Source: Blepharisma stoltei ATCC 30299 (lineage: Eukaryota > Protista > Ciliophora). From it: a stretch of 64,000 nt of DNA. The stretch is taken from positions 62,001-126,000 of the forward strand of contig CBFDEM010000043.1 in the NCBI GenBank assembly GCA_965603825.1, given 5' to 3'. This document shows, piece after piece, positions 27,502 to 58,551 of the stretch; the stretch's first letter is position 1, and every line of letters starts with the position of its first letter. The notes beneath the pieces were generated by a model. That model was not told the DNA's origin. It did no database searches and worked only from the letters and a program-made list of their open reading frames with translations. The position numbers and the translations under genes are program-made.

Positions 27502-29220
27502 TTATTTTTCTAAATTTATTGAATATTTTTTAGCCCACACCTCAACTGGATTTGGAGACGCAGGCCTTCCTTTTCTGATTTTCTGTGCATAAGTTTCATT
27601 AGGGTCATCTATTTCTAATTTTGTATACCCAAACCTATCTTTTACATCTACAACAGCTGGGATTTGGCAAGAAACTGTAGGGGTTGCCATAGAGTTTAAT
27701 GATTGTGTCCTGGTCATTGTAGGAATTAATGTAAATCCTAAGGTGCATGCTGAATACAGCTTGGTTTTTAGTGGTTTTTCAGGCTTTTCATTTAATAAAT
27801 TGTTGAGGGAAAGAGCGTGGCTGAGGTTTCTAGTTCCATTAATAGTTATGGCAGAAATTGGGCGGTTTCCAAATGATGTTAATGCTGAAATTGGCCGGTT
27901 TCCGAATGAGGATGTATAAGCCGATATAGGCCTTTGTGAAAAATGTGATGAGCTTGGCCGAAGCCCAGAATTTGGCCTAATAGACGACGCATTGGTTTTT
28001 GGTCTTATCATTAAATTCACTGGTGATTCAATTGGTGAAACTGGGATAGTCATCTGCCCACTTGTCATCAATTCTTGCAGTGGGCTTAAGCTTCTTTTAG
28101 GGCTTTGCCTCGCATTTGGCATAGCAAGCATCTGTTTAACATTAAAATCTGTTTTTTCTAGCTCAATTTTCCTTATATTCAATAGTGCTGATTTTGTAGC
28201 TATTGGATAATTTTTTTCTGTATGGCTAAAAGTTTCTTGGTCCATTACCCCTTCTTCTGAATACACATTTTTCATAATGGTTTGTGAGATATTCTTTTTC
28301 CTTTGTTCCCTCCACAAAAGCTTGTTTTCTAAGTTTGCCCTTAAGGTATTTTGGGTTTCCCTTGCCAAGCTTTCAGAAAACCGCTCTTTTGAAATTTTTA
28401 ATGCTTTTACAGAAGTAGCAGCAATTACAGAAAACTCTATAGGCTTGTTCAGAATAATTGAATCTTCCCCAACCCATTCACCTGATGCTGCAAGGCCAAA
28501 ATTATAGCAACTCGTAGTTCTTGACATCAAGCCTTTAGATGGGGCTGATTCTGGTCTTCGCACTGGATGTCTGGAGCTGACTAATTTACATTCTCCTTCT
28601 TCTATTATAAAAGCGTGGCTGCAGATTTCACCTTCTCTTATTAGTGAATCGCCATTTTTAAACTTGCAGGGCTCAAAGTAGCTTAAAACTTTTTCTTTTC
28701 CAGCTTGGCCAAGCTGTCTTACTCCTGGCACAGTTTTTACCAAAAATTCTAAGAGCCTAGCGTCATCTTGGATTTTTTTTACCTTTTCCATTGCTCTTTT
28801 CATACGTTTTCTGGGGATTTGGATAAGGATTGAATTTTCCCTTGAAGTTACCTTTGAAGGAATTCATTGATTGTGATCCAATAATTTTGTGTAACCAAAA
28901 ATTTGAAATTGGTCAAGAAAGTAGTCTTCTTTTGAACGGTTTTTCACATGAAGTTTTCCACTAAGTACAATATAAAGATCGGGCTTCTTATCTTTTTCTG
29001 TTATGCAAACTTCTAATGGTGCCAACTCTTTCAGCTTCATTAGATGACAAAACTAATTGGAAGTTACCTCAGCTCTTTGGTTCGGTGGAATTTGTCTGAG
29101 AATAGGATTTTCTTTGAATATGTTTTTGAGTCTCTGAATAATAGTTACATTAATATCTCCTTCAGTCTTGTTTGGCTTCATAAGAGCTTCTCTCAGCTCA
29201 TCTGCTGATTTTTTAAGCAT
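27502..29220 (-). CDS. Tandem cyclic-nucleotide-binding (cNMP)-fold protein
   Basis: ATG 29220; intron 29053-29067 (gtaacttccaattag, contains the in-frame TAG) and probable intron 29134-29148 (gtaactattattcag); TGA at 28864. LYIVLSGKL and GDSLIREGE..AFIIEEGEC..GEWVGEDS motifs. Confidence 0.8.
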
Positions 29221-29421: not shown

Positions 29422-30579
29422 CTAATATGAGTGAGACCATTTTCTAAAGAAAATCAATGTGTCTATACCTAATAGCAATAAAGGCACATAAAATACTGCC
29501 CAAAATGACAGAACATGCACAATTTTTCTATATCTTGGCTTCTTATCACAATAATAGCTTCTCTCAAAATTTGACGAAAAATGATCCAGGCTGATTTTTT
29601 CTTCAATCAAAATATTTCCATAAGAGTTTCTTATAGACATTTTTAAAAGTCTAAACTGTCAGTCAATCTCTATAAATCCAAAATTTTTAACTGTGACCCT
29701 ATGCCCTACGTTAAAGGTAAAAGGAAGCCATCCATAGAGATAAAGCAATATCAAATTTCCTCCCGTCGTAGTTATTGTATGAGTCATGCCGCTTGACGTA
29801 ACTTCGTAAAATAAATTATCATTACAAGTAATTTTCAATATTTCTGCCATGTGGACATCTCCAGTTAAAAGAATTACTCCTGAGATGTCGTTGATTAAGC
29901 TTAAAAGTTTATTTCTTGAGTATTCATCCCATCTTTCTGCTTTCCCAAAACGATCTTCTGTATAAACTTGTATCCCACTTGCTATCAAAGTGATATCTCC
30001 AGGCGTTTTTAATTGGTTTTCGAGCCATTTTCATTGCTCTTCGCCTAGGATGTCTACATCTTTTTCATTAAAATAGCGATTATCAAGCAAAATAAGCTTG
30101 ACAGTTTTTCCATTATTTCCAAAGCTAAATGAAATATAAATTCCTTTATGGCTTGTTCTATTTATATTGTCTTTTTCATCAATAAACTCAAGAAATAATT
30201 CTTTATAAGCATCTTTTAGAGGAAAATGTTTATCACCATTATTAATTCCGTAATCGTGGTCATCCCAAATCCCTGTTATCATTGTTTTTTCTGTCAAGGC
30301 TTTATATTCTGTATTATTTTTAAAATTTTGGTACATTTTTCTTGTGGCTTCTGGGTCCCGAGTTTTGAAAAAAGGAGGGTGAAATACAAGAACGTCTGAG
30401 TAAATTATATCGCCAAGCCATATAAAAAGGTCCGGGTTTAAATTTTGTATTGATTTATAAAGATCCGGATTATCATTCCCAAATTGATTTGCACAAGACC
30501 CAAATGCAATTTTTGTTAAATCTTTTGATTGGTCAACTTTAAGAGAGGCTGCTAAAATTGGAAGGAAAATCCATATCAT
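29422..30579 (-). CDS. Alkaline phosphatase D (PhoD) family, with signal peptide and C-terminal TM helix
   Basis: IAFGSC, WLGDIIYSD, WDDHDYG, LLDNRY and LTGDVH motifs; TGA at 30031 (LGEEQ-W-KWL) and 29659 (IEID-W). Confidence 0.9.
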
Positions 30580-30756
30580 TTTATTGTGAAAAACTATGGC
30601 TTATAAGTTGTAATAAAAATTGATAAAATTTAAATAATTCGGTAAAATCATTTAAATATTGTCGATATTAGCATTATTATAAGTTCCTGTGGAAATTTAA
30701 AAACAATTATAAATTATATGAGCAATTCCATTTTAATTAGCTAAATATTTTGAATA

Positions 30757-32290
30757 TTAAGCAGCATAGCTACTATATCTCATATTTTCGTAAACTCTGT
30801 TAAGAGCATTCACATATGCAGCGTCTCTATAAGAAATTCCATACATCCTTGCTGTGTTTCTTGTAGATTTCACTGATGTTCTGATAATTTCATCAAGAGC
30901 TGTATGAACCATTTCAAGCTCAGACGGAGGACGATGTACTAATACAGGCCAACTCGTAGCCGCTTTTAATAGAAATTCCATCAATTCAATTATATATTTT
31001 ATATAAAATTTTCTAATTTTAATTAGAGAAAAATAAGCCATTTCTATCTAGTACTATTAATACCCAAAGGAATATTTTTTCATTTGAGTTAAACTCTCAT
31101 CTCCTTATTAGTTTATCAGGACTAATATGGCCAATATTTTTCACATACTCAAAATATGACGTAATCACCCCTCCAGTATTCATTACAATATCAGGCAAAA
31201 TCACAATTCCTTGATTTGATAAATATTTTTCTGCATTTAACATTATTGGCAAATTTGCTGCTTCCGCAATAATTTTGCAGTTAATTTCCCTCATATTTTC
31301 TGAATTAATAGAATTTTCAACTGCAGCTGGTATATAAATATCGCATTTTTCCCTTATAAGGTCTTCCCCATCTAAATAAGTATCTCCTCCATTAAACCCT
31401 TTTACAGTCCTATGTCTCTTAAAATGTTTTAGCAGCCCTGCTATATTTAGCCCATTTTCATTATAAGTCCCTCCATCTTTTTCAATAATCCCAATAATTT
31501 TCGCATTCCCCATTTCCTGTAAAAACTTCGCAATATTTCTGCCGACCTTCCCAAATCCTTGAATTATGACTGTTTTATCATCAAGACACGGCGTCATATC
31601 ATGCCTTTCTATAGTTTCAGGATATTTCAAAAATTCATTTATTGCACAATAAAACCCAAAACCAGTTGCATCATCTCTTCCAGCGATTCCTCCAATAGAT
31701 TCAGGCTTCCCTGTCACAACTGCAGTCGAATTAAGATCATTTGGGGCAAGCTGGACATATTCGTCCATTATTCAGCCCATAACTCTGGAGTCAGTTCCTA
31801 TATCAGGGCCTAGCACATCTATAGAAGTCCCTAAAAATCCGAATTCTTTGAGCTCTCGTGCATATTTCCTTGTAAGCCGCTCTAGCTCAGCTTCGCTGAG
31901 ATATTGAGGGTCAACTGAAATCCCGCCATGGGCACCGCCATATGGGATATCAGCACAGGCCATTTTCATAGTCATCAGTACTGATAAGGCTTCTACATCT
32001 TGGATTTTCATATCTGGGGCATATCTGACGCCGCCTTTTAAAGGGTAAGTGTGGGCTGAATGATGGGCTCGGAAGGCTTGGAAACATTCAATACTACCAT
32101 TGTCAAGCTTTATAGGAAGGGTTAATTCAATTGTGTGGGATGAGCGTTTTAATGCATTTAAAAACTCTTTAGGAATTCTTGTGAATAGAGAAGAGCGGTC
32201 TATCAAGCCGTGAACAGTACCAAGGGAGCCTATATCAACGTCATATTTGGTTTTGAGAAATTTTGATCGATATATGGCTTTAAGTGCCAT
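30757..32290 (-). CDS. Glutamate dehydrogenase-like protein (catalytic Lys->His), interrupted by an 82-bp insertion
   Basis: AFRAHH, KGGVRY, PDIGT, VVTGKP..GG, IIQGFGKVG, EAAN and SYFEY motifs; TGA at 31772 (MG-W-IMDEY) and 31097. The frame breaks in the AT-rich insert at ~30991-31075. Confidence 0.85.
30991..31075. mobile_element. Putative retained internally eliminated sequence (IES), 82 bp, TAT direct repeats
   Basis: TAT at 30991-30993 and 31073-31075. Removing 82 bp and leaving one TAT restores the GDH frame (WEFNSNEKIIELMEFLL). The ends read TATATATTTT and, on the other strand, TATTCCTTTG. Confidence 0.65.
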
Positions 32291-32590
32291 TTTATTGGAT
32301 AGTTTAACTTAAACCAATAGCTCTCAAAGAGTATCCTATTTGTTATTAAAAAATAATAAATAATACTTATATTTCTTATGAATAAATTTTGTATACTTCT
32401 GAGGTAAAAATAGACTAATATTATATAGTTTGACTAAAAAAATATCTTGTAATTTTTATTTTATTTCTAAAGATATCAATATTTAGTTTAATTGCTATAA
32501 ATTTACCCCGTCACTCGTTTCGTTCTAATCTGCATTAAAATCTTTATATCCACTCTCTCTTTTTTACTTGATTCTGACTAAAATACTAAA

Positions 32591-38500: not shown

Positions 38501-40084
38501 CCTGTCATTTTCAGTCCAAAAAAACTCCCAGCAGACGATGACCCTCCTTTCATTCAAGCAAAAATCCATAAAAGCCGCATAACTAGAACGGAAAATGAGC
38601 AAGAAATTTCTTCAATAGAAAAATATTCATGGCTTGAAATTTTGGTACAAGAAATGCAATTTCAGCTGAATTATGAAATTTTAGTAACATTAGCTTCCCA
38701 TCTAAAAGTTTTGCAAGATAAATTAGGAGTAAAGCCAGATTATAAGAAAAAAGACCATCAGTTGACAATACTAGAACTATGCCCACTTTTAGACGCTTCA
38801 GATCCAAAATTAAAAGCCAACCCATCACAGGTTTCGAAAAAAAATTATTTCCAATTTATTCGGCTTTGCGCGATGAAAATTTATGTTTCTTTTAAAATTT
38901 CAGCAAAACATATTGAGCTTGATCCAGGCTTGGCGTTTGGGATTTTTAGAGCGATAGCTTCAATTAGCTTATGGCTTGTTAATACAACAGACACTCCTCT
39001 ATATTTTAAAGAGCTTTTAGTCGAAAATTCATTCCAAACCATTTCAGACCTCTCCAAACTCGTCATTTCTAACTATATCCGCCAAGGAATCTTTCAATTT
39101 TACAATCTTATCGGCTCCATTGACATTCTCGGCAACCCTATCGGTCTTATCGACAAGCTTGGAACTGGTGTATTTGAGTTCCTTAACGAGCCTGCCAAAG
39201 GTGCCTTAAAAGGTCCCAAAGCTTTTGCCCACGGCATCGAAAAAGGAATCCGCTCACTTGTAGGAAATGTCATATCAGGAGGTTTTGGAAGTGTCTCAAA
39301 AGTGACTGGAAAATTATACGGAATTGTCAGAGAAGTAGGAGGGGATAATAAAGCAGCTGAAAGGATTAATGACAGTGATAATGCAATACTTGACATTTAT
39401 GGAGGAGTTAAAGGCGGAGTTAAAGACCTCGCTGAAGGAATTACTGGGATTTTTACGAAGCCCATTTCTGGTGCTAAGGAAGCAGGAGCTTCTGGGTTTC
39501 TCAAAGGGATTGGGTCAGGGATTATTGGTGCATTTTCAGCACCAGTCTCTGCAGCTTTGAGGCTAGGCGTCGGGATTGCTTCAGGAATGACGAGCGCAGG
39601 GACATTAATTGCCCAAGGAAAAGTAAATCCTCGTGGTAGAGCTCGTTTTCCAAGATATTTTAACATGAGAAAAGTCCTTGAGCCTTATAATAATGAAACA
39701 GCCCAAGCACAAGACTTAATCAAAAATATTCCAGAGTTCAGCAAAGAACAAATTGTATTTTATTTGCATTTAGCTGAAAAAGAAGATATTATTGTAATAT
39801 TGACGCTGGACCATTTATTAGTGCTTATAAATGCAGAATTAGCGAAATTCGTAAGTATTGGAGATATAAGTTCGTTGGAAATCCATAGAACAGGAGCAAA
39901 ATTCACATTGTGTGCTGGGAACCCAGAAAATCAAATAGTTCTGAACTCAAGCTCGTTTAGCTCGTTGGCAAAGCTATATTCAGCTATATCAAGCTTGCCT
40001 TCATTTAAAGCTTCTGAGCCAAATATCAAAAAGATTGCATTCAAAAAGGGTTATAGGTCTAGCTTTTTAAGGAATCATAATTAA
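32591..40084 (+). CDS. VPS13: VPS13-family bridge-like lipid transfer protein (~2497 aa)
   Basis: Chorein_N start (AIANVLNKVLGD..GYIGKLHATIPW), WEPLLEEW, GSIDILGNPIGL and the ATG_C-like Gly-rich region; TGA at 32876 and 33563. Confidence 0.93.
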
Positions 40085-56717: not shown

Positions 56718-57389
56718 TGAAAAAAATTAAATTTATTTGTTTTCAAAAATTTTATAATTAAAATTATTTACTAACTTTAGACATTTTTTGATTGATAATT
56801 ACAGACGATTCTATAAAAATAATATTTCTGATAAGATGGCTATATAATTTGCCTGAAGAAAAAGGTTGGAGTTTACATTGTCACAATATAAACTCAAGCT
56901 TTTATTTAAATAATTAAATTTTAGTTTTATTAAGTTTTCTTACATAAAAAGGATTGATATAAACAAATTGAATCCTTTATAAAATTTTCAACTTTCCACA
57001 AGCATTTGCTCACATAAATTTGTGTTTTAATCTTCTGAATTTTAAATAATTTTTAATACTGAAAATTTGACAAAAGCTGAATAAATATCTTCTATAATTA
57101 AATATTTATCTCCGAATTATGGATAACTAAAACGTTTTTGTTCAATATTTGCTTCTCATATTGAAAATTAAAAATTCTATTTGCTTTAACTTCATTAATT
57201 AATAAATTATAGAGAAGCCCCCTTCAAGCCTGCAAGCCAGTACTCATAGCCATTAAAGCTAGTATTATAGTTTAAGACTAAAAAGTTTATAATTATAAGT
57301 AATTAAGCTCATTTTGAGATTTTATTTACCTAGTTTTGTTAGAAAGAATTATATTAAGATTTAAATTCATTATTTCTATAAATTTCTAT

Positions 57390-57759
57390 ATTAGATTCGT
57401 GCACTTCTCTGTTTTTCATCAAGTTCAATTTTTAGGCAACTGCTTATAAAGATAAAGATGGATTAGGTTTCATAATTAACAAAAATGGAATGTTGAGCAA
57501 TTGTGCCAATAAAACTGAAATGAGGTAGGAGAATCTTGATATTAATAGTATATGGTAAATCTTCTCCTCCAAGTCCTTTAAATAATTCTTTAATTTTTGA
57601 TTTTTCGATTGAAAATATTTTAAATTCCTTGCTTTCAATCAGCCATTTCTCTTTTACACAAATTAAATTAATCCCCCAACTTCTTTTCAATTGATTTGAA
57701 AATAAAATTGCTTAAAGACTATACTTTCTGGAAAAAACAGAGAAGTGCACAAATCTAAT
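57390..57759. mobile_element. MITE-like element / candidate inverted-repeat IES, 370 bp
   Basis: 27-bp terminal inverted repeats attagatt[c/t]gtgcacttctctgttttt at 57390-57416 and 57733-57759 (1 mismatch), flanked by TAT direct repeats (57387-57389, 57760-57762); no transposase ORF. Confidence 0.75.
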
Positions 57760-58551
57760 TATATAATGTTTTTGATCTTGTTTTCAGCTCTTTAAATATC
57801 TAATTTATTTCTTATTTTGGCATCAAACATTTTACTTTCTTGCCAAATAAGAAATTATATTAATATGTTTCTTTTGCTTAATGGGTAATCAGGATGACTG
57901 AATATACAAAGAGTATTCTAATGCTTATACTGATTTTCTCGACCTTCAAACCATTTAAAAATATCTACTATGAATAAAGTTCTTGTAGTTCTTATGCAAT
58001 GGCCAAATATCATAAAATTCTTGATATAGTAAGAGATGTTACACCCAAACCGTTTCAATTATCATCGAAAATATGAACAGCATGGGTTTAAAGTTTTTAC
58101 AAATTTTGGATATTTTGGCTCAAGATACTACATTATGATTTGTGAAGCATTGATTTGTGGTATTCTGAAAGGATTATTCATAGAGACATAAAAATCATAT
58201 ATGCAATAAAAATTGAGACATAAAGGGAATCAAAATAATATTTTATGGAAGGAATTCAGAATTTGAGCTTAAAAATTTTTAATAAAATAATTCATTTAAT
58301 AAAAATTAGATTGTTTTCAAGATTTGATTAATTCAATAAAATAGCAGATGCCTAGTAAATAGTAAATAAGCGTTTAAATAATTTATGCTATTATTTTAAA
58401 ACAAAAATATCAAGTGAGACGAAATAATTATTATAATATATTTGGGTTGACATTTCTCAAATACTTTGTATTTAAATAGATAATAAAATAAGGTTAAAAT
58501 GTATTTATATTGGTGCTGTAAAACGCTATTTAGTCTTATATTTGTAATTAT

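Follow-up and report, generated by a model that had tools for sequence, protein, structure and literature searches.

How does a somatic genome come to carry a GDH-like gene that runs into a stop codon within AT-rich, non-GDH-like DNA, and is this DNA a retained germline segment, an intron or neither? The question arises in the somatic (MAC) assembly of Blepharisma stoltei ATCC 30299 (41,464,486 bp in 64 contigs, UGA read as Trp), of which one stretch of 64,000 nucleotides (contig 43, 62001-126000), here called the window, was analysed. A GDH-like open reading frame on the minus strand begins with ATG at 32290, passes the residues RRWEFNSNEK, enters non-homologous residues and ends after 423 aa at a TAA (31021-31019). 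The C-terminal GDH segment lies in a different frame, which terminates at TAA 30759-30757. Gene models based on reads (RNA-seq) divide the locus into genes of 423 aa and 74 aa and call no intron. The predicted GDH-like product is truncated and would lack the C-terminal helices.

A previous reading of the same letters, made from the sequence only, had noticed the stop in an AT-rich stretch and had ascribed it to an unexcised IES of 82 bp. The stop indeed falls within this insert, and deletion of the 82 bp between two TAT copies (30991-30993 and 31073-31075) restores the frame, as that reading had claimed; the single frame has 483 codons. The deletion can be placed at four equivalent starts (30991-30994). 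Its three intact paralogues have 487-488 aa. The spacing of the restored segment, said to match that of GDH, is close but not exact: 23 aa lie between SNEK/SNEA and S[DE]L, 2 aa more than the 21 aa of the paralogues. According to an alignment of a paralogue with mammalian GDH structures, the insertion site corresponds to the segment KYERDSNYHLL, which we take to be the start of the antenna in mammalian GDH. On paper, the frame is also restored by dozens of other TA-bounded deletions, which makes frame restoration alone a weak proof; its use as stand-alone proof of an IES was dropped. The features of the locus are collected in Table 1.

Table 1. Coordinates of features at the broken GDH-like gene (window numbering)
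Feature	Position	Strand	Remarks
GDH-like gene, 5' part, codons 1-406	31073..32290	-	PF02812, PF00208; UGA codons 173 and 398 read as Trp; GGAHGG replaces GGAKGG
Insert, 82-bp, TAT-bounded, AT-rich, single-copy; probable retained periodic-class IES	30991..31072		second TAT at 31073-31075
Premature TAA in insert, end of annotated 423-aa product	31019..31021	-	
Gene, 3' part, 77 codons + TAA: remaining antenna-equivalent segment and C-terminal helices	30757..30990	-	annotated as separate 74-aa gene, ATG 30981
16-nt GT-AG stretch, proposed rescue intron, judged a chance match (without branch A)	31048..31063	-	
Empty site (15-bp direct repeat) of 573-bp IES in the same gene	31188..31202		IES annotated in MAC+IES assembly; internal control, both forms in run X6

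Independent evidence comes from relatives. Four public runs were compared over 30500-32400 as assembled contigs. Run X12 belongs to the same species, differs by about 2% in the gene and is probably strain HT-IV, judging from the study layout; its single contig skips exactly 30991-31072 and joins 30990 to 31073. Run X13 represents a second species, probably B. japonicum (inferred; the run carries another species label), and its single contig has the identical 82-bp skip and joint. At both joints three letters fit either side, and no further gaps in the coding region are listed for either contig. Relatives lacking exactly this segment, whose absence had been named among the grounds against an IES, thus exist in both cases. 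The IES at 31202 has likewise left no trace in X12, so that the germline of the second strain is not visible in this run. Nearby, a 144-bp intergenic stretch (within 30603-30748) is replaced in the second species by 222 other letters, and gene order is conserved.

Run X6, from the same strain as the assembly, has one unbroken contig across the insert with zero differences. At 31188-31202, about 115 bp from the insert, X6 gives separate empty-site and filled-site contigs. The library is therefore able to show both forms, yet it shows one at the insert, and no excised form was found among the X6 contigs. Assembled contigs lose rare variants and a minority excised form could escape notice, so this result means that the insert is mostly or wholly retained, not that retention is 100%. 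X6 is possibly source data of the assembly and hence not independent. Its contigs cannot separate the nuclei; the germline fraction presumably has the insert as well.

These data bear directly on the suspicion that the break is an assembly artefact, either a 1-bp error or a normally excised IES that entered the assembly through contaminating reads of the germline. Some MIC DNA is present in MAC preparations (PMC9942856). However, the relatives differ by 82 bp and not by 1 bp, the X6 path is unbroken across the insert though it branches at the true IES nearby, and six same-strain DNA runs contain all sampled words of the region, a seventh 0.99 of them (these runs may also be source data). We regard an artefact as very improbable.

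The anatomy of the insert agrees with that of an IES. Its length is the centre of a published periodic peak (80-84 bp class, 1035 IESs; PMC9942856 Table S1), in line with its earlier assignment to the periodic short-IES class. The previously noticed TAT-nnn-TTT is present at both ends, with TAT intact at each; this pattern at both ends was found in 10 of 24,399 background stretches and in 1 of 35 IESs. Compared with the published end consensus of Blepharisma periodic IESs, TAT rrr ttt t, the insert has TAT and TTT and leaves the purine triplet unmatched. Its GC content is 15/82 (18%) versus 38% upstream and 37-38% in the flanks (binomial p = 1e-4), a value as low as in 0.6% of coding 82-mers of the window; the median of neighbouring IESs is 0.16 versus 0.18 here. 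Stop codons occur in all six frames. The MAC genome, the only one searched, contains no second copy, and a repeat or MITE origin was rejected on that account.

An IES-likeness model was built from 35 short TA-bound IESs of the neighbourhood, with the 24,399 TA-bounded MAC stretches as background. Among the 35 IESs the insert takes the 23rd percentile for its ends, the 49th for its body and the 37th combined. Only 0.6% of background stretches score as high, i.e. the insert stands above 99.4% of them, but this background contains coding DNA, and AT-richness thus explains part of the contrast. Like a periodic IES, the insert is flanked by direct repeats that contain TA, one copy of which is left at the empty site, and it has a length (82 bp) on a periodic peak within 65-115 bp, a weak end consensus and an AT-rich, non-repetitive body. 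What was not seen is excision in this strain's own MAC: X6 has no excised path and the MAC assembly keeps the insert, although excision may still occur rarely. It is therefore filed as a retained IES-like element and not as a working IES. Observed at the locus are an insert that ATCC 30299 DNA contains and that is precisely missing from contigs of another strain and of another species, its IES-like anatomy and the premature stop it brings in. The idea of an unexcised IES in an otherwise somatic assembly is well supported by the X12 and X13 skips, the length, the ends and the composition, though neither an excised molecule of ATCC 30299 nor a germline copy from another strain was seen.

That the surrounding assembly is somatic had been argued from the VPS13 gene, and this holds: VPS13 is an unbroken frame of 2497 aa in the MAC, while the MAC+IES assembly GCA_914767885.1 places 10 IESs inside it. 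Across about 50 kb of the window, that assembly adds 71 IESs, 42 of them 64-115 bp long. The 82 bp are treated there as somatic sequence, with no IES annotated. Standard IES calling seeks insertions relative to the same MAC reference and is for this reason blind to retained inserts.

Several other elements of the window were recorded. At sites 30124, 30154, 31202, 33460, 20420 and 11045, the annotated IESs have long direct repeats (6-15 bp) of a non-TA kind and a GC content of 40-50%; this group differs from the AT-rich TA-bound class, and its member at 31202 is the one seen in both forms in X6. An annotated 76-bp IES at 28850 is an almost perfect GC-rich palindrome, with related ends at 38647 and 47503. 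An inverted-repeat element of 376 bp (57387-57762) is kept in the MAC and has partial relatives (91-94%) on contigs 29 and 39; an 86-bp IES is annotated at its right edge (57763) and a 76-aa gene within it.

Besides DNA excision, a second way of rescuing the gene had been proposed: splicing of a 16-nt GT-AG stretch inside the insert (31063-31048), which would give a protein longer by 22 aa, so that excision and splicing could yield alternative products from one locus. Removal of the stretch does restore the frame, with 22 additional residues in the predicted protein, and the stretch was correctly described as lacking a branch A at -6, where T is found. Its GT-AG ends and its length are those of published introns, 97% of which have 15-16 nt, and the extra residues would fall into the antenna-equivalent region, variable in length among GDHs. 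Nevertheless, the 16-mer has A at positions 3, 6, 7, 9, 12 and 15 and G10 and T11, whereas A at position 10 or 11 is present in 498/499 published 16-nt introns; the single exception (1/499) has A at position 9, as here. The -6 rule had been said to hold in all 17 other introns. We could fix 8 introns in the window unambiguously and found A at -6 in 8/8, so that the rule stands and the count of 17 was not reproduced. Short GT-AG stretches are, moreover, frequent in AT-rich DNA, the read-based annotation has no intron at the site, and none of the homologues compared has the 22 extra residues. We consider splicing of this stretch hardly credible, and the alternative products find no support either: the only DNA form seen in ATCC 30299, as represented by X6, contains the insert. 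Two longer GT-AG introns, of 82 nt (31094-31013) and 79 nt (31122-31044), were rejected: both restore the frame but delete conserved residues, and neither has the 15-16 nt of most introns.

Run X8, probably an RNA run as guessed by the analysis software, has shallow contigs of both the window-type and the X12-type allele over 31178-32257. A gene contig is absent over 30564-31177; the 3' 420 bp are uncovered for either allele, a hole that proves nothing, and read depth in the bin over the site is fully accounted for by a paralogue contig.

Whether the insert is an old IES or a younger intruder depends on the history of the gene. B. stoltei has eight GDH genes; four form the clade of the broken gene and three of these are intact. 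In the window gene (31772-32290, minus strand) and in all three clade paralogues, the lysine of GGAKGG, which we take to be the Schiff-base residue of GDH, is replaced by His. Stentor-type homologues have His, Ser or Asn at this position and the other four B. stoltei GDHs have Lys. The clade of the broken gene is conserved and well supported, its GDH-like proteins are probably altered in catalysis, and the His does not reflect decay of one gene.

Within its clade the broken gene shows the longest branch (0.63). Its RNA contigs are fragments of low depth, although the depth of contigs reflects expression poorly. Both would suit an ordinary germline insertion specific to the ATCC lineage, or an IES that has genetically lost its excision, in either case no longer excisable, fixed in both nuclei and leaving a young pseudogene; so would the missing excised form in X6 and the end score of the insert, in the lowest quartile of IESs. 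A fresh insertion should, however, have a recognisable donor, and the insert is unique in the MAC genome (the one searched) and decayed. Its length on the periodic peak and the intact TAT at both ends likewise speak against this origin.

The pattern of substitutions points in the same direction. Changes specific to each lineage were polarised with X13 as outgroup, with 21/25 differences of the X12 piece listed; exact look-ups and homology searches returned no orthologue DNA of a second strain or species. Downstream of the insert, all window-lineage changes among those listed are synonymous (4/4; expected synonymous fraction under random change 0.22-0.29, p about 0.002-0.007, small numbers), as are 5/6 of the listed differences from X12. 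Upstream, 2/3 of the listed lineage-specific changes are non-synonymous. The synonymous downstream changes suggest that translation of the 3' end continued through most of the period after the strains split and that the gene end was in frame until recently. Together with the decayed, unique insert, they fit an old IES with a recent excision failure; a long-dead gene or a new insertion would account for them less well. A germline insertion or a genetically dead IES is, in our opinion, rather improbable.

We propose as the likely explanation that the insert is a true short IES of the periodic class, still carried unexcised by most if not all MAC copies of ATCC 30299, where it truncates one of four GDH-like paralogues. 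It would be located in the germline and would formerly have been excised from TA to TA at MAC development, leaving an intact protein of 483 aa, and its retention would be recent. The broken gene is probably a truncated, non-functional somatic allele and not a regulated switch; the locus shows no sign of a gene switch.

Retention may have come about by drift over the long time in culture, by maternal lock-in or by a defect in cis. Most likely, we infer, the route was partial retention with drift, possibly followed by maternal lock-in; this is favoured over a cis defect. Excision would have been incomplete at some past MAC development, and insert-containing copies could have drifted to fixation by amitotic divisions over decades of vegetative growth. 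Retention could afterwards be perpetuated by maternal RNA scanning. ATCC 30299 has been cultured for more than 50 years and its MAC is nearly homozygous (PMC9942806), which would fit drift; selfing would fit too. The published low scnRNA coverage of short periodic Blepharisma IESs weakens the route through maternal lock-in. Loss of one GDH-like gene would be tolerated owing to the three intact paralogues of the clade. The stronger proposal, that the IES is still excisable and its retention is epigenetically inherited through the old MAC, making the locus a naturally occurring epi-knockout, in the soma of a heterotrich, of a metabolic gene and one of many loci of this kind by which the two crossable strains differ, we consider unlikely.

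As a single locus this is a modest case of a known kind of editing failure, in which a redundant gene is broken by a retained IES; no published description of it was found in the literature. More generally, the reference MAC genome contains at least this gene-breaking IES-like insert, invisible to standard IES calling, and annotation turns the broken GDH-like gene into two false products. If X12 is HT-IV, insert-keeping and insert-free strains are crossable and the insert becomes a natural genetic marker. Such a marker could show whether maternal control of IES excision is exerted by the 24-nt RNAs of Blepharisma, so far 'likely scnRNAs'. Should epigenetic inheritance prove true, it would be a ready-made marker for Paramecium-style maternal control in an early-diverging ciliate class.

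Among known systems, the periodic IESs of B. stoltei (82-bp class; Seah et al. 2023, PMC9942856) are the closest: they share with the insert the TA/TAT repeat, the 82 bp, the TAT-nnn-TTT ends, an AT-rich and non-repetitive body, intragenic position and a precise empty site in relatives. Excision during MAC development, by a PiggyBac-type excisase, belongs to the definition of this class. The reported retention scores of its members in MAC DNA are, however, <=0.02, whereas the insert is kept at a high level and is not annotated as an IES. The 16-mer inside it resembles the tiny 15-16 nt introns of heterotrichs (PMC9942806) in its GT-AG ends and length, but differs from them in lacking a branch A at 10 or 11.

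Partial retention and cryptic IESs have already been described for Blepharisma. The 'cryptic' IESs of the B. stoltei MAC comprise 10,048 sites with a median retention of 95% and length peaks at 72, 82, 92, 101 and 110 bp (SI of PMC9942856). Like them, the insert is an IES-like segment of the MAC reference with a length on a periodic peak. Cryptic IESs are, in contrast, interpreted as MAC-destined sequence cut by mistake (PMC9942856), while the insert is non-coding, gene-breaking and absent from orthologues, and its excised form is therefore the functional one.

IESs whose retention leads to premature stops are known from Paramecium, and the insert is similar to the weak IESs of that genus, intragenic IESs that are retained in the MAC and introduce a premature stop (PMC8354472, PMC8670300). 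Paramecium belongs to a different ciliate class, and maternal control is not known from Blepharisma, whose short periodic IESs have low scnRNA coverage. With the maternally controlled IESs of Paramecium (Duharcourt et al., as related in PMC4132734), the insert may nonetheless share inheritance through the old MAC.
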